A stretch of 64,000 bases of DNA from Antechinus flavipes (taxonomy: Eukaryota): contig NC_067400.1 of NCBI RefSeq assembly GCF_016432865.1, positions 617,086,001 to 617,150,000 on the forward strand, in the 5' to 3' direction. The notes beneath the pieces are model-generated. The model saw only the letters and a program-made list of their open reading frames with translations. It did no database searches and was not told where the DNA came from. Shown in pieces: positions 1 to 32,500 of this stretch. Position 1 is the stretch's first letter; each line of letters begins with the position of its first letter. The position numbers and the translations under genes were made by a program.

Positions 1-108
1 CTTGCCCAGGGTCACACAGCCAGGAAGTGTTAAGTGTGGGTCAGATTTGAACTCAGGTCCTCCTGACTTCAGGGCTGGTGCTCTGTCTACTGCCTCACCT
101 AGCTGCCC
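1..108 (-). mobile_element. tRNA-derived marsupial SINE (WSINE1-like), 5' part
   Basis: Reverse complement reads GGGGCAGCTAGGTG...GGAGGACCTGAGTTCAAATCTG...TGTGTGACCCTGGGCAAG, the same head as the copies at 31734 and 41668. Confidence 0.8.
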
Positions 109-820
109 CTGGTCCAATCATTTAGAAAAACAATCTGGAACTATGCCCCAGAAACTATAAAACTACATAGCCTTTGAGCCGGCAGTATCACTATTGGCTC
201 TGTAACCCAGAGACATCAAAGGAACAAAAGGACATATAGGTACAAAAATATTTATGGCAGCTCCTTTTGTGGTGGCAAAAACAAATTGGAAATTGAAGGG
301 AAGTCCATCAATTGGTAAATGGCTAAACAAGCCGTAGCATATAATCATATATATACCATGTATCATATAGTATACATATATCATATATATAATCACGTAA
401 TGGCTAACTACTATATATATATCATGTATCATATATTTTACATATATTATATATATAATCACATAATGGCTAACTACTATATATATATCATGTATCACAT
501 ATTTTACATATATCATATATATAATCACGTAATGGCTAACTACTATATATATATCCTGTATTATATATTTTACATATATCACATATATAATCACGTAATG
601 GTTAATTACTGTTCCCTAAGATGTATTTAGAAAGATGTTCCAGAAAAACATTAGAAGACCCACAAGAACTGATGCAAACTGAAGTGAGGAAAAACTAGGA
701 GATCGTTGTGCAGTGACAGCAGTATTGGAAGGATGATGGGCTGGGAAAGACTTGGCTACTCGGATCAATTCGATGATCCAAGACGATTCCAGAGGACTCA
801 GGATGAAAAAAGTGCTACCC
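109..820 (+). mobile_element. Degenerate L1 ORF2 C-terminus/3' region, interrupted by an AT-rich tandem repeat
   Basis: Translates in pieces to KIFMAAPFVVAKTNWKL...SIGKWLNK (L1 ORF2 C-terminal motif). 616-810 resembles the L1 3' regions at 38940 and 41880. Confidence 0.7.
341..612. repeat. AT-rich tandem repeat, 66-bp period, about 4 copies
   Basis: AATCACGTAATGG(C/T)TAA core recurs at 391, 457 (variant), 523 and 589. Confidence 0.9.
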
Positions 821-1199
821 CTTCCTTTAACCAGCCTTCTTTCTGACCTCAGTACCACTATCCAACCATTCTCCTCTGACTGGAGCTTTAGGATTATCTT
901 TGTTCCTGACCTTTCCCCTCTGCTAGTATCCAGTGTTGGTCTTGGGGTGTCCATATTCCCGGCATCTCGTGTGCCCCTTTTTAGTCCTTTCTTTCTTTCT
1001 GTCCTTCGAACCTCATTGAGGATCATTTTGCTTATATGTAGACAGGTCTACATCAATCCTCTGCTCAAAAAACTTCTAACAGCTCCTTCTTACCTAGCAA
1101 GTAAACTGTAAAACACCCTCTGTGCCCAAGCAGAATGCATGGCTCTTGTACGCGTCACACTTTCACGTGCTGGAAGATAGTGTGTCCCACTCCCCAGTC

Positions 1200-1560
1200 T
1201 AGGAAGCACCCCTAGTTCCTCCACCTAATTCACACACTTCCGGAATATCTCGCTCTCCTTCTGTCCCTGGCCTTAACCTCCTGGACTTCAAAGTCTCTTC
1301 TCTTCTTGCTGCCAGCCCCGGGGGCTCCTCACCCTGGAGCATCCTTCCAACCGTCTGGCCCCCTCTCCAGGGAGTATTCCTCTGCAAGAGTGGTCACCCT
1401 TCTCTCATTGGCTGCTTCTAGCTCGAGTCTCCATTTTATGGAGATCCCTAGACCCTTTATGCCCCTCCTGGCCTTGATCAGATCTTTCTGGATTTCAAAA
1501 TAACCACTCTCCCTGGCCCCAAACCTAGCTCAAGCAAAAACTGATTGACTTCTATCCTAT
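1200..1560 (+). mobile_element. Probable old L2 fragment
   Basis: Loose resemblance to the L2 3' region; boundaries approximate. Confidence 0.35.
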
Positions 1561-1984
1561 CCCCAGAGCCGAGCACGGAGCCCAGCGAGACATTAATAAT
1601 TTCTAATAATCACCGGAGTCCTTCCTCATGTGGCCAGCATTATCAGTGTTGAAAGAGAAAAGATCTCAGCTTCCACTGCCATCTCCCAGGAAGTGAATAC
1701 TGAACTTACAAGGACAGTGAGTGAATGGGGTAAAGGTCACAGCTCTCAGAAAGGAATCATGGGGATCATTAGTCCTCTCTCATTTTATAGCCAGTAGAAG
1801 GATAAGTGAGAGAGCTGGTTGCTCAAGGACTTTGCAGGAACTGGAGGCAGAGTGGGCCCTCCCATGTCTCTGGGCTCCATATCTGACACCACTCAGTCCA
1901 TCTCAATGCCTGACCCTCTTTCTTGTTCCCGGTTCCTTACAAGTGTACCAGGTCTGGGCTCGTTCAGATGGGGGACCCATTTAC

Positions 1985-4900
1985 CTTGGTGGCCGAGTAT
2001 AAAGCAAAGAATGGAATAGGTTGTTTGCCAGCCTCGGAGGATATGTTAATGATCACTCCCCGGCCCCTGCGGAGTTAGAGAAGAGGATTGTGGGTGATTC
2101 AAGGGCAAAGCAATGGGAGGGAATGGAGGCTTGGATCCTCTATCTGTATGGATGGCAAGGTGGGCCCTAGAGCCGGGGAGAAGGGGATGGCTGAGGCCCT
2201 ACCTGGCGGCCATCTGCGGTAGGATGATCCGGGTCATCTGGGAAGGAAGAGAGGAACCGAGCCACCCTTAGTCCATTTCCAGAAAGCATGTGTCCCCGGA
2301 ACCCTCCTCATCTTTCCTCCCCCCCACTCCCATCCCCTGCTAAGGATGCTCCCTGTCTCTTTTCTGCCCCAGTCTCACCTGGACCATTGACAGCATGTTA
2401 CAGTTCATCGTGTCTGAGAAATTCTGGGAAGACAGAAGACAGCTTATTTTCCGGCCTCAGTGGCTCTCACTTCCCCGGGGAGCAGCCTGGCTATGGATTC
2501 CGGCTTGGATTTTGCCGAGATGTAAAGTTCTTTCTCATCTTTCAAGGCCCCCTCTCCACACCCCCCCAATCTCCCTTATGAAATTTTCTCCAAGCACTCA
2601 AAAAATCCCCTCCCCCTAATCTTGGCCCAAAGCCCAAAGAAAACAAACCCATATTTCAAAATTAATTGATAGTAAAGTGAACCCAATCTGTCAGGATTTG
2701 GAAGGCCCCGTTTTGGCCACATTAATTAGCATCCTGGCCACAGAAGCAAAAGCAGATCAGTGTCCGCCCTGATTTTAGCTCACAAAGTACTTTCAGGTTT
2801 TGGTAGAAGGGTTGGAAGAGTGGAAGATGGGAAATGGGCAAGGGGCAGATAAAGAGGGCAAGAAGAAGGGAAAAGAAGAGAAATGGAAAGAGGGAGTGAA
2901 TGGAGGGGGGCTTCCTCTACCTTGCCTGCATTCTCCACATCCAGTATCTTCTGTAGCTTGTTTTGGGTAAGCACAGCAACATTGTTAACTGAAAAAAACA
3001 AACAAACAAACAAACAAACAAAAAACCAGGACGGTATCAGAGCTAGGGGATGGGGAGCGATTCCGGGGTCCCGCTGAGTAAGGGGAGAGGGAATGGGTGG
3101 GTACCTAGAATGCCGATGTCTAGACCCTCCAGGGCTTTCTCAATGGCCTCATAGATCTCCAAGCCTCCAGTGAAGTCCACCTGGATGATTCTTGTTTCCT
3201 TCCCATAGTGTCTCTCTGTAGGAACACTCAGAGAATTCAGAAGTGGAAGCTTAGTCTCCCATTCCTTATGTTATCCACAAGGAAGTGAAGAGGGGACCTG
3301 GGGATCCTGAAAATCCTTGAAGGAGAAAATCTCCTTCAACTCTGCCTCAATAAGGGACCCTGCCCCAAGTCCTTTTCCCCTTAAATGAATCTAAGTTTTG
3401 ATTGCTTGAGGGGGAAATGAAGAGGGGACCCCCAAACTCTGAAAATCCTTAAAGGAGAAAATCTCCTTCAATTCTGCCTCAGTGAAGGACCCTGCCCCAA
3501 GGACAAACAGCTTCATCTTGTTATCTGGGTGGGGTTGGCTCAGTCTTGAAACCCACTGAATTCAATTCAAATTCCAGCTGGAAGCTGGAACGTGAGACTC
3601 CACCCACGAGCCCCTTCAGCTTGTAGCCAAAGCCCCCTATTAGAAAAGGGACAAACTAAAACCCTCTCTTGGCAGAGCTTCCAAACATGCCAGCCATACC
3701 ATGTTTGGCACACCAAGGAGCTTCTGCCCACCGGAATGCTCTTTTCCAGTGCCCTCTTCTCTTTGCCCTCACCTATTTCCTTAACTAGACTTTAACCTTA
3801 ATTCTAATCCCCATAATAAACCTCTTTTATCAATCTAGGTTTTCGGGCCTGTAAATTCCTTTACGGAGAACCTATGCTTGCGCCGAATCCCAAGGGGTTA
3901 CAGGGGAGACAAACCCTTCCATTTGATTCCCTGAACCCCGAACCTGCCACTTGACCTCATTTAACTCCCTGACCACCAGAAACCCTAATTTCATTTGGGT
4001 TCCCCAAATCTAAACCTCATCAGAAGGACCCAAAGAAAACATGGGACTGAATGGGTCAGGATCACCCCCAGCTCTTATAAAGCCCTGGGGCCTTTTGGAA
4101 CCTTGACCAGCCTTCACTTGGGAAGCACGCCCCCCACCTCCCCTCCTCACCAATGTCCTCTGCCTCCCGACGTAGCTTGCTCAGGTCTCGGCTGACCAGT
4201 ACAACATTGAGCCCTCTTCGTGCCAGCTGTAAGGAGTCGGGAGAATGAGGAGCTTGAGAGCATGGACCCACAGAACCTCCCAGAGCTCCAGAGGACCCAT
4301 CCAGCTAAGCGGGTGTCCGTGGAACAGAGGGATGTGGGGGAAATAAAACCCCGAGGACAAATACAGGAATACATATCTACCTACCATCCATCCATCATCT
4401 CATTTACCCACCCACCCACCCCTCTGTCCTATAGGTCTATCCTTCATCTGTCCATGTTAGTCTAGCGAAAATGTATCACACATGCACCCGCACATTGCAT
4501 TTGTATAGAATTTCTAGAGCTCCCTGAGCCAACCATGGCCCGAGGCTCTAGGAAATGACCAGAGCACACAGAGGGGAGCACACCAGGTGCTTAAAGACAG
4601 ACTCCGATGGGCCTGGGATCCCCCCTTACCTCGTGAGCGTAGCTCCTGCCGATTCCACTCGTAGCCCCGGTTACCACTGTGGGAAGACAAGAGGCTGGGA
4701 AGGGGGGTCTCTGGGTCCCTGAGGAGGAACCCTCTGGAGGACCCCCCAAATGGGAAATCCCAGGAAGGGGCAGGGAGAGAACCTTCGTTCTCTGCCTCCT
4801 CCCTTTCAGGCCAACCTCACGGCTCAGGAGCCAGAAGGGACTTAGAATTGTTTGTACCGTGGGACTCAACCAGAAAAGGGGCCCGCAGACGTAGGGCCGC

Positions 4901-5459
4901 GGGTGAGCGCCCACATTTGCCATGCACAGATCAGCTGATGTCAGGTAAAGCTTCTGAGGATGCTGGGAATCATTTGGTCCAACTCCATTCCCCAAAACAA
5001 AAACAAATTGCCAAAGCCAGCCTTGAGGCCCAGAAAGATTCTATGGCTTCCTTAGGGTTAGCCACTTCCCCCAGGGATCCAGTTCAAGGCCAGCCCTAGG
5101 GCAACCCGATGCTCATTTAAAAGTGAGAAAAGTGGAGGGGGGGAAGGGAGGGGCCTCCATAGTGATCAGAAACCAGACTGGATTTTGAATCTGGGCTCTG
5201 GAGTCCCCCAGACTTTCCTAAGGCACTGGACCTTGAGACCCCAGAGCCCTTGTCCCTCCCCCCCCTCCCCGTCCCCCCACACACCTGCCCAGGGCCCTTG
5301 TTTCCTAAGAGAGATCCCAAAGCCCAGGCCAGCTCTGGGCAGCCCGAAGAGGATCAGGGCCCGGCCCAGCCAGCAGACGGCTCGCAGAAGCCACCAGGCT
5401 GCGGCCACGGTGCCCAGCAGCTGCAGGGTCCAGCTGCTTCCTTCCAGCCATGGAGCCAT
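1985..5459 (-). CDS. HSD17B3/HSD17B12-family short-chain dehydrogenase (hsd20b2-like), exons 1-8; the 3' exons presumably lie left of the window
   Basis: join on minus: 5459-5285, 4676-4630, 4226-4151, 3215-3105, 2988-2921, 2423-2379, 2237-2203, 2066-1985 (175/47/76/111/68/45/35/82 nt = 213 codons, all GT-AG, in frame). Motifs: N-terminal hydrophobic anchor, TGATSGIG (Rossmann), VNNV, NCN, NISSEAG, catalytic YSATK. The 47/76/35/82 exon sizes match the HSD17B3/B12 family structure. Confidence 0.9.
3244..4022 (+). mobile_element. Solo LTR (ERV1-like) in intron 3 of the SDR gene
   Basis: TG...CA termini, 4-bp TSD GAAG (3240-3243 / 4023-4026), AATAAA at 3815-3820, internal 132-bp-period duplication (about 3282-3369 / 3414-3500). 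Confidence 0.75.
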
Positions 5460-5542
5460 CCTGGATGGACAGCCCGGAATTTCAGCAGGACAGGTTTGGT
5501 GTGGGGCAGGCTCAGCTCTGCAGCTGCCGAGGGTGAGGGATG

Positions 5543-5550
5543 AAAGGTCA
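5543..5550 (+). promoter_or_regulatory. NBRE-type nuclear receptor monomer site (AAAGGTCA) upstream of the SDR ATG
   Basis: Exact AAAGGTCA 84-91 nt upstream of the ATG at 5459; function not shown. Confidence 0.35.
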
Positions 5551-5830
5551 TAGGAACACCCAGGTCCTAAGGTCTTTCTGGGTAGGGAGGGGCATCCTGG
5601 CATGGCAGGCGCTTGGAAAATGGGAGTGGAGAAGGTCGAGCCCCGAGGTGTAGGACGACTGGCCTGTGCTATAGCGACCAGCTGGGGGTGGCCAGCAGGA
5701 AGGATGCTCACGGGCAGCGATGCTTAGGACTCTGGCCTGTGGAGTGGGGGGGGGGGGGAAGAGGGGGAGGGGAAAGTGGGGCAATACCCCGTCCCTCCCG
5801 AGGACACTCAGACATCTTTTGCAAACACAC

Positions 5831-5973: not shown

Positions 5974-6564
5974 CTAAGCCTGGGGGCTGGGACCCGGCTC
6001 GGCCGGAGCTCGGATGTCGGGCAGCAGGCGGCAGCTGGCCACAATGTCCAGGCGCTCGGCCAAGGCACACAGGTCGCTCCGGGCCAGGCGGATGCTGTGG
6101 GCCGCTGCCAAGCCCACGGCCTGCGCTGCAGCCAACCGGGCTGCCAAGCCGGCCACATCGAGGCCGGCTCGCCGGTAGACCCCGCGTACGGCGGCGCTCA
6201 CATCGTGGCCCAGGCGAGCCTGGCTCTCCGCCAGCCGGTGCTGCAGCAGCGAAGCCCGGGCCGAGCCGTGGAACAAGGGGGCCGCGGGAGCCTCCTCTTC
6301 CGCCCACTCTGGTTCCCGAACCACCACAAGCGGAGGCAGATCGCCCTGAGCCACCAGGGTCGCCGGCTCCTCCTCGGAGTCAGTCTCGGGCGCCTCCCCG
6401 GCCACGCGCAGCCCCGTGGGGCGGCCCCGGCACAGCGGGGCCGAGCCCAGGTACAGCTCCTCTTCCTCTGACGACGACGCCGCCGAGTCGGTCTCCAGCG
6501 CCTCCCCGGCCACCACCGTCTCCGGTCGCCGACCTCGCAACCTTCGGCCAGCCTGCGAAGCCAT
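5974..6564 (-). CDS. BLOC1S3: Biogenesis of lysosome-related organelles complex 1 subunit 3 (196 aa, single coding exon)
   Basis: MASQAGRR..RPETVVAGEALETDS..SSSEEEELYLG..LAESQARLGHDV..LCALAERLDIVASCRLLPDIR matches the known protein. Splice acceptor at 6584/6583 just upstream of the ATG. Confidence 0.97.
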   Translation of the reverse strand: MASQAGRRLRGRRPETVVAGEALETDSAASSSEEEELYLGSAPLCRGRPTGLRVAGEAPETDSEEEPATLVAQGDLPPLVVVREPEWAEEEAPAAPLFHGSARASLLQHRLAESQARLGHDVSAAVRGVYRRAGLDVAGLAARLAAAQAVGLAAAHSIRLARSDLCALAERLDIVASCRLLPDIRAPAEPGPSPQA

Positions 6565-8623: not shown

Positions 8624-11600
8624 ATGGCGGATGAAACTCTGTTCCAGCTGCTTCACACGCAGGTGGTGGCGGCCGCGTACGGCGCGGGCCGGGGCTCGGG
8701 AGATGAGGTGAGGCCAGGAGGGCCTCCCTATGTCCTCTCTGCCTTCTGTCCCGCTCCCTTCAGACTGCCCCTCTTTCCCTCCCTTTCTTCTCCCCTCTTC
8801 CTTTCCCCTTCCCTCTTCCTTTCCCCTTCCCTTCTTCCCTCTTCCTTTCCCTTTCCCTTCTTCCCTCTTCCTTTCCCCTTCCCTTTCCCCCTCTTCCTTT
8901 CCCTTTCCCTTCTTCCCTCTTCCTTTCCCCTTCCCTTTCCCCCTCTTCCTTTCCCCTTCCCTTCTCCCTTTCCCAGACCTCCCCCCCAACCATATCCTCG
9001 ACTCTTCTCCCTACTCCCCCCCCCGACCTTTTCCCAGAATTCCCGGTTCCCTGTCTCCCAGTCCCTCACGCTGCGTGTCTGAGCGGAAGCCCGCACACCT
9101 GTGATTAGAGAGCGCGTCCGCGGCCCGCAGCGTGCTCACCTTTTCCTGGGCGGCCCCGGGCACACAAGGTGGCAGCCATGTTGTGCAGTGGGCAGAGTTC
9201 GGGCCGGAGCTAGGACGGCCTGGGGGAACCTGCCTCAGTTTCCTCTCGGGTAAAACGAGCGGCAGGACGAGAGCCCCCCCCCCCCCCCCCACCGTGCGTG
9301 CTCTGGGGTCCCGGAGAAGTGGCCCCTCGCACATTGCCCATCCCGATTCAGGGGCAGCTTAACAAACGGAAATTTTGTGGGAGCCGCGAGCCCTCCAAGG
9401 GCAGCAGGGGGCCCAGAAAAGGCTGTGCGCCTCAGAAATGCGTCAGGGAATATCGGGCTGGGCTATCTTGCTGCCCCAAGGACTCGGACTTCTCTGGTGG
9501 GAAGGGCCGGCCGGAAGGCTGGGCAGGGAGACCCGCGGCCGGCCCCTCGCTGGGGAAGCCACGACTGGGGTACTTTTAGGGCACTCGGCATTTTGTTATT
9601 GTGGGGCAGCTCCCCGGGGCTCTGCCTTTGGTAGGGGAGGCTCCGGGGTCTTTCCCTGGATCACCGGCCAGCTTGGGTCCCAGAGGGAGCCGGGTCATGC
9701 TGTGGGCCCAGCGTAGACACAGGAATTCCAAGTCCTTTTGGGGGAGAGGGGGAAGCGAGGAGGGGTGAGCGAGAGGCACGTGGTGACACAATCAGCCTTG
9801 TGCTTAGGGTCTGATGGAAGGCAGCGTGGAGGAGGGGTCCAGGGGGAGAAGCTTCCATCCCCAGCCCCCGCACATAGTAGGCTTGCAGGTCTGTAAGGGC
9901 TGGCTAGGGAAGGGAAGACAGATCAGCGGAGGTGCTTAAGGATGGTGGAGATGGAGAAGGTTGGTAGGCAGTAGGGAAGGGGCCCCAGGCCTGCAGAAGG
10001 AAATGGAGGAAATTGCAGGAAGAAGGGCCACCTTGTCCTCGGTGCCTTGAGCAAAGGTGGGAGCACATGGGGTGCCCAGCTGGAGTCTGGGGGAGCTGGA
10101 AGGCCCCTGGGAGCATTCTGGCTCTTGCTTTCCCCTCTCAGGGAAGCTCCTTCAGAGAAGGGAGGGGTGCCCAGGGTTTGTCTGGGCCAGCCTAGAGAGC
10201 CAGGGCACACCCACCCATGGGAGGAGTGCTGCCTGATGGATGTGTCTCCTCTGCTTCCGGCCTGACCCACCTGTCTCACCTGCCCTTATTTCCTGTCCCC
10301 TTCTGTAATGTTCTCTGGAAGCAGGTTTCTTGGGGGCTTCGGGAGGCAGCCTTCGTTTCAGTTCAGAGTAATAATCCCCTCGAATGCAGCCACCTGTTAA
10401 AGTCCAGTCCTTTATTGTCTCCTTCCTTGGGCCTGGTTAGCTTTCTTAGAGGCCTCTCTCTCCGTGTTCCAAGAGCTCTTGCAGCTTGTCCTTTGCCTCT
10501 GCTTCTGCCAGCTTCAGCCTCTCGTCCTCCCTCCGAATCCAAACTTGTGACTCTCCCGAAGTCTCTAGTGGGCTTGTCCTTATATATGCTCTCTTAAAGG
10601 TGTGAACCAAGTACATAAGCATTGTTTCTATCATTTTCCAGGGACTTAGCACCTTGTTTCAAGTTCTGGCCCCTAACAGCTCCTGCTTTCTTTTGATTTA
10701 GAACGTAGGTGGTCATGACCTCCCTGACTTCTCAAGGAGATGAGAACCCCAAAAAAGGTGATCACACCTTCCCTGACTCCTCAAAAAAGGAGTGAAAACA
10801 CCATAAAAGAAGGTGATCACACCCTCCCTGACTGCTCAGGGAGATGAAAACACCAAAGGAAATGGGAAATCAAATCAGATTAGCGGATTTCTGAAGGGGC
10901 TAACTCTTAAAACAGGAATACATAAATCCATCAATATGGGAGGTATTACACATAATTACGTAAATTACATAAGCACATAGTAACACAACACAGGCTAATA
11001 GTGATGTAACAAATAATATGAATCAACATGAGGAGTTAGACATGTCCATAAGTTCTAGAAATAGTCCAAAAGGAATCTATTGTCCATTAGTTCACGTGCC
11101 AGGAATCCAATCATTCCTGCAAGCTTTGAAATCCTGCAATAGTCTCATCTTGTGCTAGGGAATCCAATGATTCCTGATGGTTTTCAAGTCCTGCAACAGT
11201 CTCATTATCAGCCATGCTCCTTCAGTGTCAAATGTTTCTTAGATCTCCTTTGTTTGGAGTTTTTTCTCTTTTTTTCTGTCTCTCCAGGTACTTATTGCTA
11301 CCCATCTGTTTCCTTCTCCGTCTGTAGGAATACAAGCAAACCCTCTCTCAGGCAGTTAACCTATCTAATTCCCTTCTATTTACCATTTTTGGGATTTCAC
11401 CTCATCATCTAGCAATTATATTGGAGCTGTTTGCACTGGACACTGCCCTGTTGGGTTTAACAAGCCTGTATTCTCCCTAATTGTAATCTCTAGCTGTTAT
11501 CTGATTGCTTTTCTATTGGTTGATCATGTAATCCTTTTCTGCCATGTGATTACTTTTAGGCTGATTGATCACATCAGAGTCCTGACCTTCTAAAGTCTCT

Positions 11601-14600
11601 CTGGGTGTAACCTCAGCTGCTATCATGCCCCACCTATCTTTTGCTTGATATCTTGGGGCTGGGCCCTGCCTCTCATTTCCCTGGGTCAATCTGCATTCAG
11701 AGGCCCAGTGAAAGCCTCGGTTACATTTTGGACATGGGGTTTTGGGTTTTCTCTCACCCTGTCTTCTCATTCTATCTCCATATCTACAATGGGCTCTCAA
11801 ATGTCCAACATTTCCACGATGAAAGCATCGATGAGTGTCTCTAGAAGTCCCTTGCCAAGAGGGACCCTGTCTTCCCATGTTCATCATAGTCTGGGCATAA
11901 TAAGCATTTGTGCCCACTGTGGCACAGCACCTTATGATCTCCTCTAAAGGAGCATCTTTGTCTAATCCCCATATAATTATTTTGCAAACCTCATTGGCGC
12001 TTTCCTTAGCTAGATGTCTGGTCATTATTTCTGTTGCTGCATTATCTCCAATGGTTCTTATTACAGCTGTTTGCAAACATCCCACAAAATCCGCAAAAGG
12101 TTCATTGGGACCTTGCTCTACTTTTGTGAAGGCTTCACCTCCATCTTTCTGTCCAGAGAACCCCAAGCTTTTATTGCAGCCTTAGAAATTTGCTCATGCA
12201 CTGTTATGTTATAATCAATCTGTTCTGAATCTCTCCATATTGACCTTCACTAACTAGTTGGTCAAAAGCTATTTGTACATTAACTCCTGTTTGCCTATTG
12301 TGTCTGGCTCGACTCCTACATAATTCACGATACTCCGAAAGCCACAACAAGTTTTGTCCAGGTTCTAAACATGTCCTCGCTATGGATTTCCAATCCAATG
12401 GAGTTAAGATTTCATAAGACAAATTATCCATTAACATCTTAACATAAGACGATGTAGCCCCATAAAGAGTGCAACCCTTTTTCAAATCCTTAATTTTTTC
12501 CAGATCAAAAGGAGTATATCTTCTTCCTTTTTGACCTCAAGAGTCAATCTCTTCAATCACAGGGTAAACATTTATAAAATCAGATACATCCTGTCCATTT
12601 TTTGCCTTAATGACTTTTCTAATCTTGTCACAGGCTGCTTCATAGGTGGTGCTGAATGTGTTTCTGCCTCTTCCCCTCCTCCTCCCTCCACTCATGAAAT
12701 AGGTCAGGGGAGAAGAAATGATCTAATTTCTCCAGTTGTAAATTCTTATCTGATTCTTCCTCCTTTTCACCTAGTTTAGTTGGCACCTCCCCTTCTTGCT
12801 TATGCTAACATTTAAATAATTTCCTAAAGCCAGTTATATTAAATTATATGTATTAAGTGTGTCTTTGGAAATTGAGTCAGGTCCATTATCATTATAGGAT
12901 TGACAAAGTTGCTCTCTTACTAATTTCCACTCGTTTGGATCCAATTCTTTTTCCTTAGAGAGCCAAGGAGATGTGTACTGTGCAGTTTCTAAAAGTTCAG
13001 TGATCTGCTCGCAAATTATAATCAAACCTTGGCTTTTCATAACCCTGACAATGCTCTCTGCACATTTTCCTTGAAGAGACACAGAAGGCTGTTTTCTACA
13101 CATCTGCCCCATTTCAGCTGAAATTCTACTTTAGCTCTTTAACAGTTCCTTTGTTGTACTTGCCCTAATTTCTGGGTCACAGATGAAGGTTCTTGGTCCC
13201 ACGTACAGGAGCCAAAATGTAACGTTCTTCTCTAAAATATAATGTTCTCTGAGAGCAGGTTTCTTGGGGGCTTCTGGAAGCAGCCTTCGTTTCAGTTCAA
13301 TGTAATAATCAGCCAGCAGTTAAAAGTCTCTTCCAAAATAGCCCGGTAGTTTTCTTAGAGGCCTCTCTCTTCTTGGCTCTGAGAGCTCTTGCCGCTAGTC
13401 CTTTGCCTCTGCTTCTGCCAGCTTCAGCTTCTGTTCCTCCCTCCGAATCCAAACTTGTGACTCTCCCAAAGTCTCTAGTGGGCTTGTCCTTATATATGCT
13501 CTCGTAAAGGTGTGAATTCTAACGTGTGAAGCAAGTACATAAGCATTGTCTCTATCAATTCCAGCGACTTAGCAGTGAAGAATGGGTGTTATGGGCCAGA
13601 ACTTGAAACAAGGTGCTAAGGGGGAGCCCGAGGTGGGGATGCCCGAACCCAGGCCCAGCAAGAGGGGCCTTCCCCAGGCTCTTTCCACTTCCCGTCAGTT
13701 GTTGGACTCCCCAAAGTACCCTGTGGCTCTGCAAGATCACCAGCTTTTCGGGGAGCTTTGCCTTGATGGTCTGAGCCACCTGCTCCTCCACAGCCCTTGG
13801 CCCAGGCCTGCCGTGGGCTCCTGCTGAGGGGTTCAGGTAGAAGGATGCCAGGGTCCCTGCTGAGAAAGGGCCAGGAGCCCCATCGTCCCCTCTGGCTTAC
13901 TGGTAGACCTTTGGGGGCCCCGAGGCTGGGGCTTATGGGCAGATCCTGACTTCCATGTGGGCTTCTCTGGCTCACTGTGTGACCTTGGCCACCTCCCTGC
14001 CCTCTCTGGCACTTTGACGGGTGGAATTAAAGGTGCCTGCGGGCTCTTCCAGCTCCGAGCCCTTTCCTTTCCTGCCAGTCACTCATTCCTGATTTTTCCT
14101 TTGTGGAGGGAAGGGAAGTGCCTGGAATTGGTGGCCCAAAGTCCCCTTTCCCCTTCCTCTCCTAGGGGCTGAGGGCAGGCTTGACGGTCCTGGAGGGCAT
14201 GGGCTTCCGCGTGGGCCAGGGCCTGGCCGAGAGGTGAGAGCCAGGGTTCCGGCCCCCAGGGGACATGGGGGGCTCAGGTCCTTCTCCATGGGAGGACCAC
14301 CTGGGGGCCTTCAAGGGTCCTGGGAGCCAGCAGGGGTGAGGGCGGTAGGTCTTGCCCCAATCCCAGGCATTCTCAGACCTCGGGCCCTGGCCTCCCTCCT
14401 CCCATTCGCTCCCCGGCTCCCCCGGCTGTCCGGCCCTCTGCAGCCCAGGGTCAGAGCCCGTGTTTCTCTCAGGCTGCCCCGAGGGGCCCCGGCCTTCCGA
14501 GAGGAGCTGGACACCATCAAGTTCCTCTGCAGGGACCTGTGGGGAGCCGTGTTCGGGAAGCAGACGGACAACCTCAGGACCAACCACCAGGTGGGTGATG

Positions 14601-20375: not shown

Positions 20376-23300
20376 ATGGCCAGGCCCTATGCGGCTGTGG
20401 GCGCCGCTGGGACGATGCCCTCCGTGGGCCAGGCTCGCTTCCGACTGGATCGCTTTGTGGACCCCGACAGCTGTCAGGGGAAAGGTAGAGGGTGTCCCCC
20501 CGGGCCCGGACCACCTTGATCCTTCCCAGGGGGAGACAGACTCAGGGCTGAGGGAGGAGAGGGAGCTCAGTTTGGTGGGGAGGGGGTGGGCGGCGGTGTC
20601 GGCCTGGCAGGGAGGGATGGCAGCAGGGGTCGCTGGCTAGGGCACTGGTTTGTCAGAGCCGCAGTTTGCCGAAGGGGGCGAGGATGACCGACCACCAGCC
20701 AATGAGGACCCTGATGGAATACCGCCTTCTCGGGGCTTCTGGGAGAGGGAAATGTGACCAAGGGGCTCCGGGAGCCCCTGACCTCCTCTGCTGGGGTGAG
20801 GGGAGGGCAGCTGCCCCTCATCGCCCCCCCTTCTCTCAGACCTCTTTGTGGGACACCCCTCATGTGCCCGCAAGGCTGCCCCCCTGCAGCCCCATTCGGC
20901 CACCTCTTCTCAGGCGCAGGAGCCTCAGCCCTCATCCTCCGCTCCGGCCTCCACGTGGCCCTCCCCCGTCATCTCCAGAGACCCTCCCTCTCCTCCTCCC
21001 GGCGCAGGAGGGGTGGGGGTCTGGCTTCTACTTCTTCCCCGGGCGAGCGGGCATCTCTGCCGCTCGTGCCCCCTCGGTCCCGGGCCCCGGCCTAGTCATC
21101 GCCCGGTCTTCCTTCTTTCTAGGATTCCGTCCCCAGCGGCGCCAGGATGGAGCGGCCTTTCGGCCTCCCGCCATGGGCTCTGCCCACCATGCCCACAGGC
21201 CACACCCGGGGAACGCCCGGGGCTGGTCCCCCTCCTTCCAAGCCCCCAGGAACGGAGGCTACTGGCTCAGGCAGCCGGGGGCGGCTCCCATGCCCCCAAA
21301 GCAGATGCCCCTGCGGCAGCGGCACTGTCCGGGTGAAGACCGTGTCAGAGGCTGCCCCGCGGGCAAAGGCCACGAGACGGCGCGAGACCGCCCCCCTCCG
21401 GCGGCCACCCTGCCCCCCTCTCCGCGGGCTGACACCGGCCCCGAAGTCCGGGTCCCCAGCCCTGCCCGGCCCTTCCCAGCCCTGGGAGCCTGTAGCGCCG
21501 GCTCCTTCTCCGCTGGTACTTCTCTTCCCTCGGACTCTTCTCGGGGCTCCTGGCTGTCCCTCCCCCTCCGCTCCCGCGCTGTGGGAACCTCTTGGTTTTC
21601 GGGGCAGGGCAGCGTCCCCCTCTCCTCCTCTGGGCTCCTGCTCCAGGTTCTGGGGGCCGCCGGCCCTTCGGGGGCTGCGCTCGCTCTGGGAGGCCTGGCC
21701 CGGGCCGTAGGTCCCTCCCTGCCGCCGCCGCGGGTTCTCTTCCCCCCAAGCTCTGACCATCCACCCTCCTCCCAGCCTCCGGCCCGGGGCCGAGCTCCCA
21801 TTTCCCGTCTCCGCCGGGTGCTGTCCGGAGGTCCCGGGGCTGGACGTCGGGCGAAGCCGAGCTCAGGAGGCCGAGGATCAGGGCCCAGTGGGCGAGGACT
21901 CGGCCACGGGAGGGGCTCGGCTCACTCTCCTTGCATCTTTCCCGGCTCTTCTCCGGGCCGAGGCCCTTGGCGGGGCGGCCTCCGCTCTCCCCAGCGCTCC
22001 CGGGCCCGAAGGCCCGAGATCCGGCGCTTCCTGCTCTCCGAGTCCGCTGGGACTTGGCGTCCGGCTCCGTTTCTTGCTTTCCCTCACTCCGGCCCGTGGG
22101 GGTCTCAGGCTCACCTCCCTCCCCCTCTGCTCGCGCCGGGCCCCCGGCCCCCGTGCCCTCCTCGCCACCCACGCCCGCCTCCACTGCTCCTTTCTCCAGG
22201 GAGCACCGCCAGTTTCCTCGGCGACCCCCTCGCCCAGCAGGCCCTGACCCCTAAGGCCGGATCACACGGCCGTGCTCCCCTGCGGAGGCTTCTGTGCTCC
22301 CGCGGCCTCCTGGGGGCTCCGGGGAAAGCTCCGGCCTCAGTCAGAGCCCGAGCACAAGGCGAAGGAGCTTCCGGCCTCCACGTTTGGGCTCCGGATCGGT
22401 CTGAGGAGCCGCCTCTGCCCGGGGAGGGGAGGCCGGGGTCCGGCCTCGGGGCTCTGGGGCTGCTCGTGGGCTCTGGCTCCTGCGCTGCAGCTGGCGATGG
22501 GGGCAGGGAGCCTGGGGCTGGCTCGGGGACCAGGTTCTCCTGTTGGCGGCTGCTTCTGGGGGACACGGCTGCTTTCTGGGGCTGTCACTGGGAGGCGGGA
22601 GGGGGAGCCGCGGCCCCGCCTCACAGCCCCCCTCGCCCGCAGACATAGTGACGGAGGACGACGTCTACTGCAGCTGCCTGTCCAAGACGCTGTGCCACGT
22701 GCCCACGCCCGTGACCGTGGGCTTCTACGCGCCCTTCGGCTGCCGCCTGCACATGATGCTGGATAAAATCACAGGTGGGTCCAGGGGCCCCGGCGGCCCG
22801 GGTGTCCTCTGAGGGGAGGGCCAGGGCCGCCTGACCCTCGGGCTGCCCTCTCCGAAGGGGCTCGGTCCCCGCCACCCGCCCCCACACCGGCAGCCCTGGG
22901 GTCCGGTCCCCGCCCCCCGCCCGCTGACGGGCCTCCTCTCGCAGCCCTCATGCAGAAGGAGGCGGCGCAGCGGGAGGCGGAGGAGCTGCAGCAAGTGCGC
23001 TGGAGGCCGCGGCAGGTGCACGGCTGGGGCTTCCCGCGGCTGCTCTGGTACCTGGTCTTCTACCAGCCGGTCATCACGGAGCTGCACCTGCGCCGGAAGA
23101 ACGTGCACTTCCTGTTCGTGCGCTTCAGCGCCTGGCAGTACGCGGGCACCGACAAGCTGTGGGCCGGGCTGGTGACCACGCTGTGCGACGGCATCCGCGA
23201 GCACTACGGGGCGCTGCCCTTCAGCCTCTACACGGTGGTGGGCAACAAGCCGGCCGCGGCCCCCGACTGCTGCCAGCGCGAGTGGCACTGCCGGCGCCGC

Positions 23301-24788
23301 GTGTGCCTGGTGCTGCTGGCGCTGGCGGCGGCGCTGGCGCTGGGCGTGGGCCTGCTCTACCTCTCCCTCGGCGGCCGCGCGCCCGGCAGGGAGGGGGGCG
23401 GCCACGGCAGCCTGCTCAAGGTCTTCGGGGGCGCCGCCACCACGCTGTCGGGCTCGGGCCTGCTGATGGCGCTCTACTCGGTGGGCAAGCACCTGTTCGT
23501 GAGCCAGCGCAAGAAGATAGAGCGGCTGGTGACGCGCGAGAAGTTCGGGAGCCAGCTGGGCTTCATGTGCGAGGTCAAGAAGGAGGTGGAGCTGCTCACC
23601 AACTACCTGCGCTTCCTGGAGATCTTCCAGCGGCGGCGGCTGCGCGTGGTCCTGGAGGTCACGGGGCTCGACACCTGCTCCTCCGAGCGCGTGGTGGGCG
23701 TGCTCGACGCCATCAACACGCTGCTCTCCGACGGCCAGGCGCCCTTCATCTTCATCCTGGTGGTGGACCCGCACATCCTGGCCTCCTGCCTGGAGAGCGC
23801 CAGCTCCATGAAGGGCGTGGCCGACAACGGCTACCTCTTCCTCAACCGCACCGTCACGCTGCCCTTCTCGGTGCCCATCATGGGGCGCCGCACCAAGCTG
23901 CGCTTCCTGGAGGACGCCGTGCAGAGCCGGGACGACCTGCTGTACCGGGCCATCGGGCGGCAGCCGCGGGGCGGCCAGAAGGGGGAGGCCCCCGCGGCCG
24001 AGGGCGCCGAGCTGCTGCAAGTGGAGGCGGCGGGGGGGCCGGAGCAGGGCATCGAGGCCGAGGCCGGGCGCCGCATCCGCGAGGCCCTCTTCTGCCTGCA
24101 CGACGAGCGCGACTGTCTCTACGAGTACGTCCCGGACAACGTGGTCTCCATGCGGCGCATCGTCAACACGGTGCCCATCACCGTGAGGCTGCTGCACGAG
24201 CACCAGGCCCGCGGCGAGGGCTCCGGGCCCACGCCGCGCCAGGCCGTGGCCTGGGTGGTCCTGGCCAATCAGTGGCCCTGCCGGCTGAGCTGGGCCCTGC
24301 AGTGCCTCGAAGACCGCCAGCAGGTGGAGGGGGGCCCGGACCCCCAAGCTCTCCTCTGGGGCATCTTCCGCGACAACAGCCGCGAGCTCCACACCATGAC
24401 CAAGGCCCTGCAGAACGTGGTGGACCTGGACGGGGACCCCGAGCTCTTCGCCCGCTTCCTGGGCGTCGACTTCCCCTTCACCGTGGCAGAGGCCCAGAGT
24501 CTGCTCTGCTGCACCGTCAACCTAGACCACTCCATCCGCCGCCGCATGGGACTCATCCGCAGCATCCGCGCCCTTGACCCCCAGGGTGGTGACCCCCGGG
24601 GCTCCGCCTCCCACCCGGAGAAGCCTTCCTCCCCCCACCGGGACCGGCCCCTCCATGCAGGCGGCATCCATGCCCTCGACCCTCAGGGCGGTGACCCCCG
24701 GCGCTCTGCCTCCCACCCAGAGAAGCCTTCCTCCCCCCACCGGGACCGGCCCTTCCACATGGGCAGCAAAGCGGGCACCATCTCCTGA
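20376..24788 (+). CDS. NKPD1: NTPase KAP family P-loop domain-containing protein 1 (about 825 aa)
   Basis: join 20376-20484, 21123-21515, 22643-22774, 22945-24788 (2478 nt = 826 codons). DIVTEDDVYCSCL..GFYAPFGCRLHMMLDKIT..FSAWQYAGTDKLWAGLV..VVLANQWPCRLSW match the known protein. The first coding exon is assigned by splice phase and partial similarity (F.DP....KG), so it is less certain. Confidence 0.93.
24562..24760 (+). repeat. 102-bp in-frame tandem duplication in the NKPD1 C-terminal coding region
   Basis: ALDPQGGDPRGSASHPEKPSSPHRDRPLH at 24570 and ALDPQGGDPRRSASHPEKPSSPHRDRPFH at 24672. Confidence 0.92.
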
Positions 24789-25082: not shown

Positions 25083-26026
25083 GACGTGTCTCAGTCAGAG
25101 TGGGCTTCAGAGCCGGCCCGTGGGGGCGCGTGGCCCCAGGCAGGCCCCACTAGGGCGGAGCACTCTCCCCTCAGGGTAAACTGGCATTTCTGGAGGATGC
25201 TGCGTCCCAGGAAGAGGAACTACGTTGGGGGGGGGGAGGAGGTAAGAGGGAAGACACCACTCACCTCCCAGCCCTGGGGCCACCTGCCCAACCAGTTCTT
25301 CTTTTGGGCTCACAAAGGGTGGGGCACTCAGGGATCAAATGGGGGGAGGGCCATGACGTCATCCCCACTGCTCGGGGAACAAGGGGGAAACGCACCCACT
25401 CCCAAGTCGGTCACTGTGGGCCCAGCTTGGAGTCGGGGGCTTTGCCTCCATCTCACAATCGCACCCTGGGGATGGTCAGGGTGCCGGCAGCCCAGGGCAG
25501 CCTCTAAACCCCAGATGTTCTACACAATCTAAACTCAGGCTCACCCCCCCATCCCCTGCTTCAGATGAACACGGGGGTGCCCTTGGGGGCCAGCCCCCCC
25601 CCCCCCCGAGTGTGAATGTCCCGCTCTGACCTCACTGCAGTGCAGGGAGCCTGGTGGGGCCATCCCCATCGCCCCATCACCTGGCACCTGGTGCCTGCTT
25701 CTCTTCCAACAGGCCCATGCTACCACAGACGGGAAATGTGCCCTTTCTAAACAAGCATTTCCATTTGACCTCCTGGGTCACCAAAGAAAGAAGGACTCGG
25801 GGCTCCCCATGCTGGCGACGGAGGCGTTTAATAGAAAAAAGTCTGACCAGAGATGTGTGCCGCAGGGAGAGGAGGGGCCCCACCAGGGTCTGCCCCGCCC
25901 CCACCCCAATTCCTCTCTCTGAGGCTTATCTCCAGGCGGAATGCCGAGAAGCGGGCTCCCCGCCGCTGCCAGGGAGCCCCTCTGACCCCCAGGCGCCACC
26001 TGGACACCTCCGAGCTCCCTGATAAA

Positions 26027-29500: not shown

Positions 29501-32500
29501 CAGACCTGGGGGAACAAGCCGGAGGCTGCTTTGAGTCCTGCTCGGCTTCTTTCCCTCCCGCTTCCCAAGCTCCCTATTTCTAGCCTGAAAGGACAGAGCT
29601 CGGGAAGGAAAAGGAAAAGGTCTCGTCCGAGAAACAAACCCAGGCCCGGCTCCTGGCGGAGCGAAGGCTGAGGAGCTCGCTCAATGCTGGGACCCTCTCC
29701 CCGCCCCATTTTACAGATGGAGAGTCTGAGGCAAACACAGACATGGGCACGATTTCTGGACCACTAGTGACCTTCCCACCAATTCGGGGTAAGCGGCGTT
29801 CCTCTTGGATGGCTTCTGGCCAGGAAGAAGCGAACCCCTCTCCTGCTTGGCTCCATCTCCCATCCCCAAGGGGAGGCGGCTACCCTGCCCACCTGAGTCC
29901 AGAATGTGGTTGTTCCGAAGGTCCAGGATCTGGATGGAGCAGTTGAACTTGAGAAGGTTCCCGAGCTGGGCCGAGTCCTGGAGCCCATTCAGTTTGTTGT
30001 CGGCAAGGTACAGCTCCCGAAGGTTCATATTCATCTTGAGGGCGGTGGCTGCCAGGGGCACGCCCAGGACCATGAGCCCCCTGCCCTCGCCCACTCCTCT
30101 CTCCCCACCTCGGTTCCCTCTGTTCTAGCCCATAGCTCCTCCTGCTGCCCTGTTCCGTGGGATTTCCCAATCACCAGGGTCATCACTGGGAACATGGAAG
30201 CCACTAAACCGTTATTTATCACCCTATTAAAAACCCAGGGAAAGGCTGAGCCTTTCATCACAAAGTCAGAGAGGAGTCACGGACTTTAAGAACCCCAGAA
30301 CCCCCAATTGCCAAAGTCCGAAAGGGCCAAGAACTACCGGCCCAAGCATCATTTACGGAGCGAGGCCTGAAGCCCGGGAAGGGGCCTGCCCCAAGCCACC
30401 CAGCCTGCCGGGCCGGAGCAGAAGCCGTGCCGAGACTTGGACGGGGTCTCGCCGCTACGGTGCGAGTCCCGGGAGGCTCAGGTGCTGCCCCGAAGCCTCT
30501 CCGGGCCCTTGCCAGGCGCCACTCACCAAGAAGCACAAGGGGCCGCCCGGACAAGCTAGCGTTCTCCAGGTGCAGCACCGTGAGGCTGCTGCTTATACGC
30601 AGCGCCCGAGCCACAAAGGGGGCCGAGTGGTCCAGCAGGGGGGTGTTGTGGGCATCCAGGTACTGCAGGCAGTTTGTCTAGTGGGACCCAAAGAGCACCA
30701 GGTCAGAGTCTGGAGCTCCATCGCCCCACCTGAGCCTCCCATGGCCTCCATTAGCTCCCCTATATCTCCACCCACGGGGATGCACCAAGCAAAACCCTCA
30801 GTCAAGCTTTTACATGGTGGCTCTCCAGAGCCTCCTGACTGCTTCGGACCCACACCCAAATGTTCTGCCCAAGGCTGCAGGGGGCACTCGGCCCGATACC
30901 CTAGGGCATGTGTGTCCCTCGGCACATGGTGGGCTCTCTGAGCTGTAGGGAATTTTGCCAATAGTACTGCACTCAGGGAGCTGAAGGGAGACAGAACGCG
31001 CTGTGATGCTGGCAGGGAGGGGGGCAGGTCCCTGCAGGGATCCTTGCTCTCAGACATGTGACGCAGAAGGAGTGTGAAGGAAGACCTCAGAAGGGGCTCA
31101 GAACTACTGTGACCTCCAAGGCCTGGAGGTGGACACTGACCTTCCGCATCATGTGAGCAGCGGCCTGCCAGCCCCTCGTGCCAATGTGCTTATTGAAGGA
31201 GATGTTGAGATGGGTGGCCGACTCATAGTATTCTATCATGTCGAACAGTGCAGATGCTCCCTGAGGGAAAGAGGAAGAGGAAGAATCTTCCAGGCACCAG
31301 CAGGTGACAGGTGCAGCCGCGGCAGGCCCGGTCAGAAAGCCCCAAGTCCCTGGCTGTCCTCCCCCCCAGGGCAGATGTGAGTCCCCAGAAATGGAGCTTC
31401 GTTGGCCAATCCCCCCGCCAGTGCCCCGGCAGCTCGCTTGGGCTCAGGGGTCCCACTCACATCCTCATCCAGGCTTGTCTGCTCCAAGTCCACCACCTTA
31501 AACTGCAGCCGTTTGAAGATTTCTTCCAGGGCCTCACAGGCTTTGTAATCCAGCTTCTCTCCTGGAATAAAACCATTAGGAGGCAGGGTCCTGTCTATCG
31601 CCGCACACCCTCACCCTCACCTGGGGTGCCCAGATCTTGTTATTCTGGGGGGGGGGGTAACTTCTGGCCCTCCCGTGGCCCTGAGGCGGAAGTGTTTCAA
31701 GGTGTTATGAGATCTTCAAAAAGTTGGCGAGGAGGGGCAGCTAGGGGGTGCAGTGGAGAGAGCACTGGCCCTGAAATCAGGAGGACCTGAGTTCAAATCT
31801 GGTCTCAGATACTTAGCTGTGTGACCCTGGGCAAGTCACCCCAATTGCCTCAGCAAAAAAAAAAAAAAGTTGGCAGGGATTCTAGCTGGAGACTGTGTTC
31901 ACTTCTAGTTCTGACACAGACCCCATCCCTCCTTCTGAGAGATCACAACAAGCAGGACACTGAAGGTGGACACCCTGCCCCTTGAAGCCTCATCAGCCAG
32001 CGGCCCCCATATCTCAGCAGAGAGCCAGCCCCTGCCTCCCAAGGCATGACTTCCCTTCTTCTGGCTCTCTGCCCTTTTCCCTTGACCTGCTCTGGCCGGC
32101 CTCTGCTCTCCCTGGTGTGAACCACTGCGTGGTCTAACTGGCCCTCTCTGGAGCTCTAAATGGCCAACCTAGCCCTGGCCCACGGATTCTCAGTCGGCCC
32201 CCGCCACTCTTGACAACGGTATCTGGGGCTGGCAGGAACCTGAGATCACCAAGCACGGCCCCTCCTTTTTCACAGATGGGCCACCAGTGACATACCCGGT
32301 GTCCGAGGGAACAAAGGGCAGAGTGAGGCTGAGGGTCCAGCCCTCCCCCGCCTCCTTCCCCAGCCCACCCAGGAGATGCAGGCAAGCTCTGGACACCAAC
32401 CTTTCAGATCAAGGCAGTCGATCCGGTGCGCCAAGTCAGTAAATTCCTGCAAAGAGTAAAGGCAGTGCTTAGGATGCCGGTGCCCCACAGGCCCCCAGAC

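Follow-up and report, generated by a model that had tools for sequence, protein, structure and literature searches.

Which gene lies at the left end of a 64,000-nucleotide stretch of Antechinus flavipes DNA (contig NC_067400.1, positions 617,086,001 to 617,150,000, hereafter the window), where a chain of minus-strand exons next to BLOC1S3 encodes a short-chain dehydrogenase (SDR) resembling HSD17B3 and HSD17B12? An initial annotation, made from the letters of the window, had read this chain as an intact steroid dehydrogenase and as a possible marsupial copy of the fish gene hsd20b2, retained by marsupials and lost in eutherians. The follow-up described here indicates that the gene is very likely the A. 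flavipes orthologue of hsd20b2, intact, with exons 1-8 of 11 in the window and with its frame under selection. It is an annotated and widely conserved gene carrying a misleading database name, and it is neither new nor special to marsupials.

The exons were searched for by translating the minus strand of window positions 1-5600 and joining the open segments at AG...GT boundaries. Eight exons, running from 5459 to 1985, add up to 639 nt and read as 213 codons uninterrupted by a stop, and AG...GT is found at each internal boundary of these hsd20b2-like exons 1-8. Their coordinates and sizes (111, 68 and 45 nt for exons 4, 5 and 6) reproduce the GT-AG exons and open codons reported initially. The catalytic set then proposed (TGxxxGIG, NN, S and YxxxK) is also found in the peptide, with TGATSGIG at residue 61, NNVA at 138 and the tetrad N168/S196/Y209/K213. 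When single exons were scanned with Pfam, adh_short was matched by exon 8 alone, the remaining exons being too short; the full protein matches the same family with E = 5e-46. The RefSeq protein model P0109 of Antechinus flavipes (314 aa), which bears the name "very-long-chain 3-oxoacyl-CoA reductase-B-like", is 100% identical over residues 1-213 to the spliced window peptide, and a chance chain of open reading frames is therefore excluded. Because this RefSeq model with the same eight exons already exists, the window adds no new gene, and the presentation of the gene as a discovery has to be withdrawn.

Residues 214-314 have no match anywhere in window positions 1-1984. In the public record of the antechinus gene (assembly GCA_016432865.2, CM028219.1; locus L001) exons 9, 10 and 11 are placed at 25348-25413, 25669-25818 and 32280-32369, that is 9.9-16.9 kb past the left window edge, with intact AG/GT boundaries. 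The gene is intact, and the absent or broken exons 9-11 that had been envisaged as a possible refutation did not turn up. The full coding sequence comprises 945 nt (314 codons) in 11 exons, and the window holds its 5' two thirds.

Relatives were found using exon 4 (36 aa) as query against a representative library of 1.84 billion proteins, which gave 92 matches; the spliced peptide was then compared with these by local BLAST, and a full-length search with the Gracilinanus protein followed, which led to P0109. The latter search returned proteins named "-like" in ten marsupials, many placental mammals, turtles, lizards, frogs and lungfish, along with proteins named hydroxysteroid (20-beta) dehydrogenase 2 in coelacanth, sharks, rays and teleosts. 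An HSD17B12 set (platypus, birds, lamprey, sharks and ray-finned fishes) and invertebrate reductases obtained with a scorpion query were added. Two trees were made, a quick one of 85 rows and a careful maximum-likelihood one of 55 rows (LG+C20+F+G4). All hsd20b2-named proteins and the tetrapod "-like" proteins form one clade, with an ultrafast bootstrap of 100, a Shimodaira-Hasegawa-like approximate likelihood ratio test (SH-aLRT) value of 100 and a stem of 0.58-0.66. HSD17B12 forms a separate clade (100/97), and both trees agree on its split from the hsd20b2 clade. Moreover, the branching within the hsd20b2 clade matches the species tree, with SH-aLRT 97 for amniotes (quick tree), 100/99 for mammals and 100 for marsupials.

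Exons 2-10 measure 47, 76, 111, 68, 45, 35, 82, 66 and 150 nt in antechinus, Tasmanian devil and channel catfish hsd20b2 alike, each with eleven exons, a comparison which covered hsd20b2 genes and may not discriminate these from HSD17B12 and HSD17B3. The initial view that exons of 68 + 45 nt (exons 5 and 6) fit hsd20b2 is borne out by the catfish gene. The signatures put forward initially fared unevenly: NCN and SSEAG do separate the hsd20b2 clade from HSD17B12 (N[IV]N and SSASG), whereas TGATSGIG and DFTGG are only partly diagnostic between the two. In identity, the antechinus protein reaches 44-50% with fish hsd20b2 and 48-59% with placental members. The tree, the NCN and SSEAG signatures and the equal exon sizes, together with an identity of 33-43% to HSD17B12, HSD17B3 and HSDL1, support the proposal that the gene belongs to the hsd20b2 lineage and is not a copy of HSD17B12 or HSD17B3. 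Within vertebrates, hsd20b2 is the third gene of the HSD17B3/HSD17B12 group of SDRs, and the naming of marsupial and placental proteins as "very-long-chain 3-oxoacyl-CoA reductase-B-like" or "HSD17B3-like" should be corrected to orthologues of fish hsd20b2.

The distribution in placentals was surveyed with a tarsier protein as query, and the best 120 matches, all with at least 51% identity, were considered. Among the matches listed, Xenarthra are represented by Tamandua (three copies) and Afrotheria by Tenrec (four copies), Echinops (three), elephant, manatee, aardvark, golden mole and elephant shrew; horses, rhinos, pigs, peccary, hippo, camel, deer, yak and buffalo are also present, as are bats, hare, pikas, guinea pig, chinchilla, degu and porcupine. 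At least eight placental orders thus have annotated orthologues, frequently in tandem; for the tarsier itself there are two protein models, with a further dehydrogenase gene called just upstream of the queried copy. The idea of an extra enzyme retained by marsupials and lost in eutherians fails because orthologues are annotated across placental orders (Xenarthra, Afrotheria, Perissodactyla, Artiodactyla, bats, lagomorphs, hystricomorph rodents and tarsier). It is also annotated in turtles, lizards, frogs and lungfish, and a cattle transcriptome paper already uses the name hsd20b2 and lists the gene among those marking liver (PMC13381022). According to a 2020 paper (PMC7064643), no hsd20b2 was found in tetrapods; as a statement of tetrapod loss this does not hold, since the orthologues found here contradict it.

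Among the best 120 matches of the tarsier query there was no protein from anthropoids (including human), strepsirrhines, muroids (mouse, rat) or carnivores. This agrees with the earlier view that humans are without the gene, and within the reach of this search human protein sets appear to have no hsd20b2. The losses appear to be confined to certain lineages, the human and mouse lineages being among them, and the enzyme has therefore been ignored by mammalian steroid biochemistry. Tandem copies in Tenrec, Echinops, Tamandua, tarsier, guinea pig and several frogs give the family a birth-and-death pattern. A separate observation concerns P0093, isoform X1 of Gracilinanus agilis, which continues with unrelated sequence after the residues encoded by exon 8; as its source contig is 5.7 kb long, the 3' exons are probably missing from the assembly and the model runs into the intron.

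The orthologue of the Tasmanian devil is 85-89% identical to the antechinus protein. A 1,186-nt contig assembled from devil RNA (L003, run SRR8048121) aligns to the gene in eleven blocks, every intron having been spliced out, and it carries 72 nt of 5' untranslated region. The gene is transcribed and correctly spliced in the Tasmanian devil, and a lack of transcripts, earlier named as a ground for rejection, was not encountered, given this full-length spliced transcript in the sister genus. RNA runs of 'organism A' contain 5-6% of the region's words and 18% of those of exon 1, which fits a relative and not Antechinus flavipes. All words of exon 1 occur in runs of 'organism C', and neither set of runs is taken as evidence on expression in Antechinus.

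Frame maintenance was judged against a neutral expectation taken from intron rates (0.072 substitutions per site and 0.0104 indel events per bp). The neutral odds are about 0.075 for a stop-free frame, 0.0004 for the absence of a frameshift and 0.05 for the preservation of all splice dinucleotides, and at the measured intron rates the survival by chance of frame, stop codon and splice sites in both dasyurids comes to about 1e-6. The coding sequences of antechinus and devil differ by a single in-frame codon indel, and the frame is intact in ten marsupial species. The two dasyurids show 46 differences (18 derived in antechinus, 12 in devil and 16 ambiguous), most of which are conservative (I/V/L-type) and fall at variable columns. 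Columns that are at least 90% conserved are left once by each species, through G141A in antechinus and A63S in devil. Read together, the sequences indicate that the reading frame is clearly maintained by selection.

The active-site residues N168, S196, Y209 and K213, as well as S86 and R87, are invariant in 81 aligned family members. In an AlphaFold model with a mean predicted local distance difference test score (pLDDT) of 92 and a predicted template modelling score (pTM) of 0.90, one long N-terminal helix (residues 5-42) is followed by the alternating strands and helices of a Rossmann fold. The classical SDR features are present, namely TGATSGIG, the N-S-Y-K tetrad and, in the model, the Rossmann fold, with NNVA replacing NNVG. 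R87 occupies the position of the NADPH-binding arginine of the family and corresponds to the HSD17B3 residue at which mutation impairs cofactor binding. From what is known of the family, the N-terminal helix (residues ~5-42) would anchor the enzyme in the membrane of the endoplasmic reticulum, NADPH would be bound through TGATSGIG and S86-R87, the preference for NADPH being due to the arginine, and the tetrad N168-S196-Y209-K213 would carry out keto reduction of a lipophilic substrate. By homology with the zebrafish enzyme, the likeliest reaction would be a catabolic 20-beta reduction of cortisone or related C21 steroids, probably in the liver.

Several points weigh against the reading of the gene as a constrained hsd20b2 orthologue. 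The main one concerns the tree, which covered hsd20b2, HSD17B12 and invertebrate reductases, so that HSD17B3 and HSDL1 are set aside by identity values and by the species-like branching in the clade; the fish hsd20b2 neighbourhood is not shared (10 kb per side of the catfish and shark loci); RNA support comes from the devil, the runs with parts of the region being too word-poor to be Antechinus flavipes; the antechinus motif is NNVA (G141A) where 97% of the relatives have NNVG; and the assayed members of the lineage are fish enzymes only. The rates point in the same direction. Between antechinus (L001) and devil (L002), two species with 75 substitutions that allow a coarse estimate, the non-synonymous rate (dN) is 0.087 and the synonymous rate (dS) 0.075, giving a dN/dS of 1.16 overall; it is 0.84 in residues 59-285 (the catalytic core) and far higher in the last 29 codons (12.5 non-synonymous vs 0.5 synonymous changes). 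Because dN is close to the intron distance of 0.076 between the two species, amino-acid-changing sites evolve at about the neutral rate. The adjacent BLOC1S3, with a dN/dS of 0.14, differs significantly from the dehydrogenase (Fisher p = 5e-6). The dehydrogenase protein is therefore under weak constraint, or under constraint mixed with diversifying selection. These ratios, together with G141A in the NNxG motif and the loss of the lineage in several placental groups, could be taken as signs of a gene being lost in dasyurids, its frame looking intact while functionally unconstrained. Such decay is very unlikely in view of the improbable survival of frame and splice sites at neutral intron rates, the single in-frame indel, the rarity of departures from conserved columns and the mostly conservative differences, the full-length spliced devil transcript and the frame kept across ten marsupials. 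We prefer to read the gene as a maintained enzyme, much of whose surface and tail is under weak or diversifying selection, and not as a dying gene. As for the idea that HSD17B12 or HSD17B3 was recently duplicated in marsupials and that the copy resembles hsd20b2 by chance, to which the RefSeq names 'very-long-chain 3-oxoacyl-CoA reductase-B-like' and '17-beta-HSD type 3-like' would lead, it has next to no chance: the clade stands apart from HSD17B12 at 100/100, mammals branch within a set of reptile, frog, lungfish, coelacanth, shark and teleost proteins, and identity to reviewed Swiss-Prot entries (Foldseek) is just 35-43% for HSD17B12, 33-40% for HSD17B3 and 34-41% for HSDL1. The candidate of a marsupial HSD17B12 duplicate is refuted by the separate, well-supported clades.

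A more serious alternative, possible although on balance doubtful, accepts the gene and its orthology and gives it a substrate other than that of the fish enzyme, so that it would act as a 17-ketosteroid, 3-ketoacyl-CoA or xenobiotic carbonyl reductase. Long stems lead to the mammals (0.39) and to the marsupials (0.55) in the quick tree, lineages diverge strongly in the region after S196 (KQPIPF) and in the C-terminal third, fast protein evolution with repeated tandem duplication is typical of enzymes with shifting substrates, and the RefSeq pipeline names these proteins after HSD17B12 or HSD17B3. Nevertheless, the marsupial tail FRRS is without the lysine-rich ending of all HSD17B12 rows; HSD17B12 is itself retained in mammals, and its function therefore needs no back-up; and the assayed fish Hsd20b2 proteins, the only members assayed, are cortisone 20-beta reductases (PMC3551853). 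That mammalian hsd20b2 enzymes are active hepatic glucocorticoid 20-beta reductases, overlooked as humans and mice lack the gene, and that the dasyurid replacements are an adaptive retuning of glucocorticoid clearance, is an unlikely combination; if true, the retuning would be relevant to the male die-off of Antechinus, which corticosteroids drive. The links drawn initially to backdoor androgen synthesis or dasyurid stress biology are speculation, and the near-neutral amino-acid rate combined with a kept frame in dasyurids offers a modest lead on glucocorticoid handling in Antechinus. In humans, the enzyme or enzymes forming the 20-beta-hydroxy cortols and cortolones are said to be still unidentified (PMC6857441).

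The surroundings of the hsd20b2 orthologue are conserved among marsupials. The order TRAPPC6A(-), BLOC1S3(+), SDR(+), EXOC3L2(-) is common to antechinus, Tasmanian devil, tammar wallaby, brushtail possum and bilby, so that the gene lies between BLOC1S3 and EXOC3L2 in five marsupials, with 515 bp in antechinus between the stop codon of BLOC1S3 and the ATG of the dehydrogenase, which follows it on the same strand. The divergent gene beyond BLOC1S3 is, to judge from the TRAPP domain in the devil locus, TRAPPC6A, and an 813-aa Sec6-domain gene, downstream of and convergent with the dehydrogenase, is taken to be EXOC3L2. The flanking genes are as given in the initial annotation (Table 1), with leucine-rich-repeat exons near 30 kb that are taken to be PPP1R37. 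Outside marsupials, the horse and tortoise loci had no called neighbour and no similarity to BLOC1S3 or EXOC3L2 within 10 kb; within 10 kb per side, catfish hsd20b2 is flanked by an IBR-domain gene and an SLC12 transporter and the shark gene by an IF4E gene.

Table 1. Features placed in the window, with positions counted from its first letter
Feature	Position	Strand	Description
Intron 8, first 1,984 bases	1..1984	-	whole intron 11.9 kb
Exon 8	1985..2066	-	82 nt; ISSEAG...YSATK with catalytic S196, Y209 and K213; last exon within the window
Exon 7	2203..2237	-	35 nt
Exon 6	2379..2423	-	45 nt; NCN signature including catalytic N168
Exon 5	2921..2988	-	68 nt; NNVA (nearly all relatives: NNVG)
Exon 4	3105..3215	-	111 nt; DFTGG..EIY
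Exon 3	4151..4226	-	76 nt; S86-R87 after strand beta-2
Exon 2	4630..4676	-	47 nt; cofactor-binding motif TGATSGIG; AG/GT
Exon 1	5285..5459	-	175 nt; ATG at 5459; GT donor; N-terminal hydrophobic helix and start of the Rossmann fold
BLOC1S3	5974..6564	-	single coding exon, 196 aa; Pfam BLOC1S3 E = 3e-43; upstream neighbour
NKPD1	22950..24788	+	large exon, 612-aa open reading frame, KAP NTPase domain

Some other elements of the window may be mentioned. Intron 3 contains two direct copies of a segment of ~90 bp (3281-3370 and 3413-3500), ~130 bp apart as judged by eye, and an AT-rich tandem repeat with a unit of ~60 bp is found at ~340-600. The end of the NKPD1 exon encodes two near-identical copies of a segment of ~30 residues (ALDPQGGDPR...HRDRP). 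On the minus strand, an open frame of 217 aa at 11516-12166 combines a CCHC zinc knuckle with a retroviral Gag p24 C-terminal domain (E = 6e-16); it is an endogenous retrovirus fragment between BLOC1S3 and NKPD1, and probably lies inside TRAPPC6A.

Among known systems, the antechinus protein shares with teleost and zebrafish Hsd20b2 the clade (100/100), the exon layout, the tetrad, the TGATSGIG-type motif, both NCN and SSEAG, and 44-50% identity; unlike them it stands on a long marsupial stem and has the tail FRRS, where most fish rows have lysine-rich endings. HSD17B12 is alike in fold (template modelling score 0.84-0.90), N-terminal membrane helix, tetrad, NNVG-type motif and length, but four features absent from the antechinus protein set it apart, namely TGATDGIG, N[IV]N, SSASG and a lysine-rich C-terminus; the antechinus C-terminus reads ...VKRFRRS vs ...KK.K.. 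in 15 of 15 HSD17B12 rows. With HSD17B3 the antechinus protein has in common the fold, the length and the position of the cofactor arginine, at 33-40% identity, whereas in identity it is closer to hsd20b2; the human HSD17B3 gene is located on chromosome 9, outside the 19q13.32 block. CBR1, also an SDR, differs in being soluble, in having no N-terminal membrane helix and in standing outside the HSD17B3/12/20b2 group. It is a possible functional analogue of hsd20b2, because CBR1 is described as the relevant cortisol 20-beta reductase of humans in work cited in PMC6857441.

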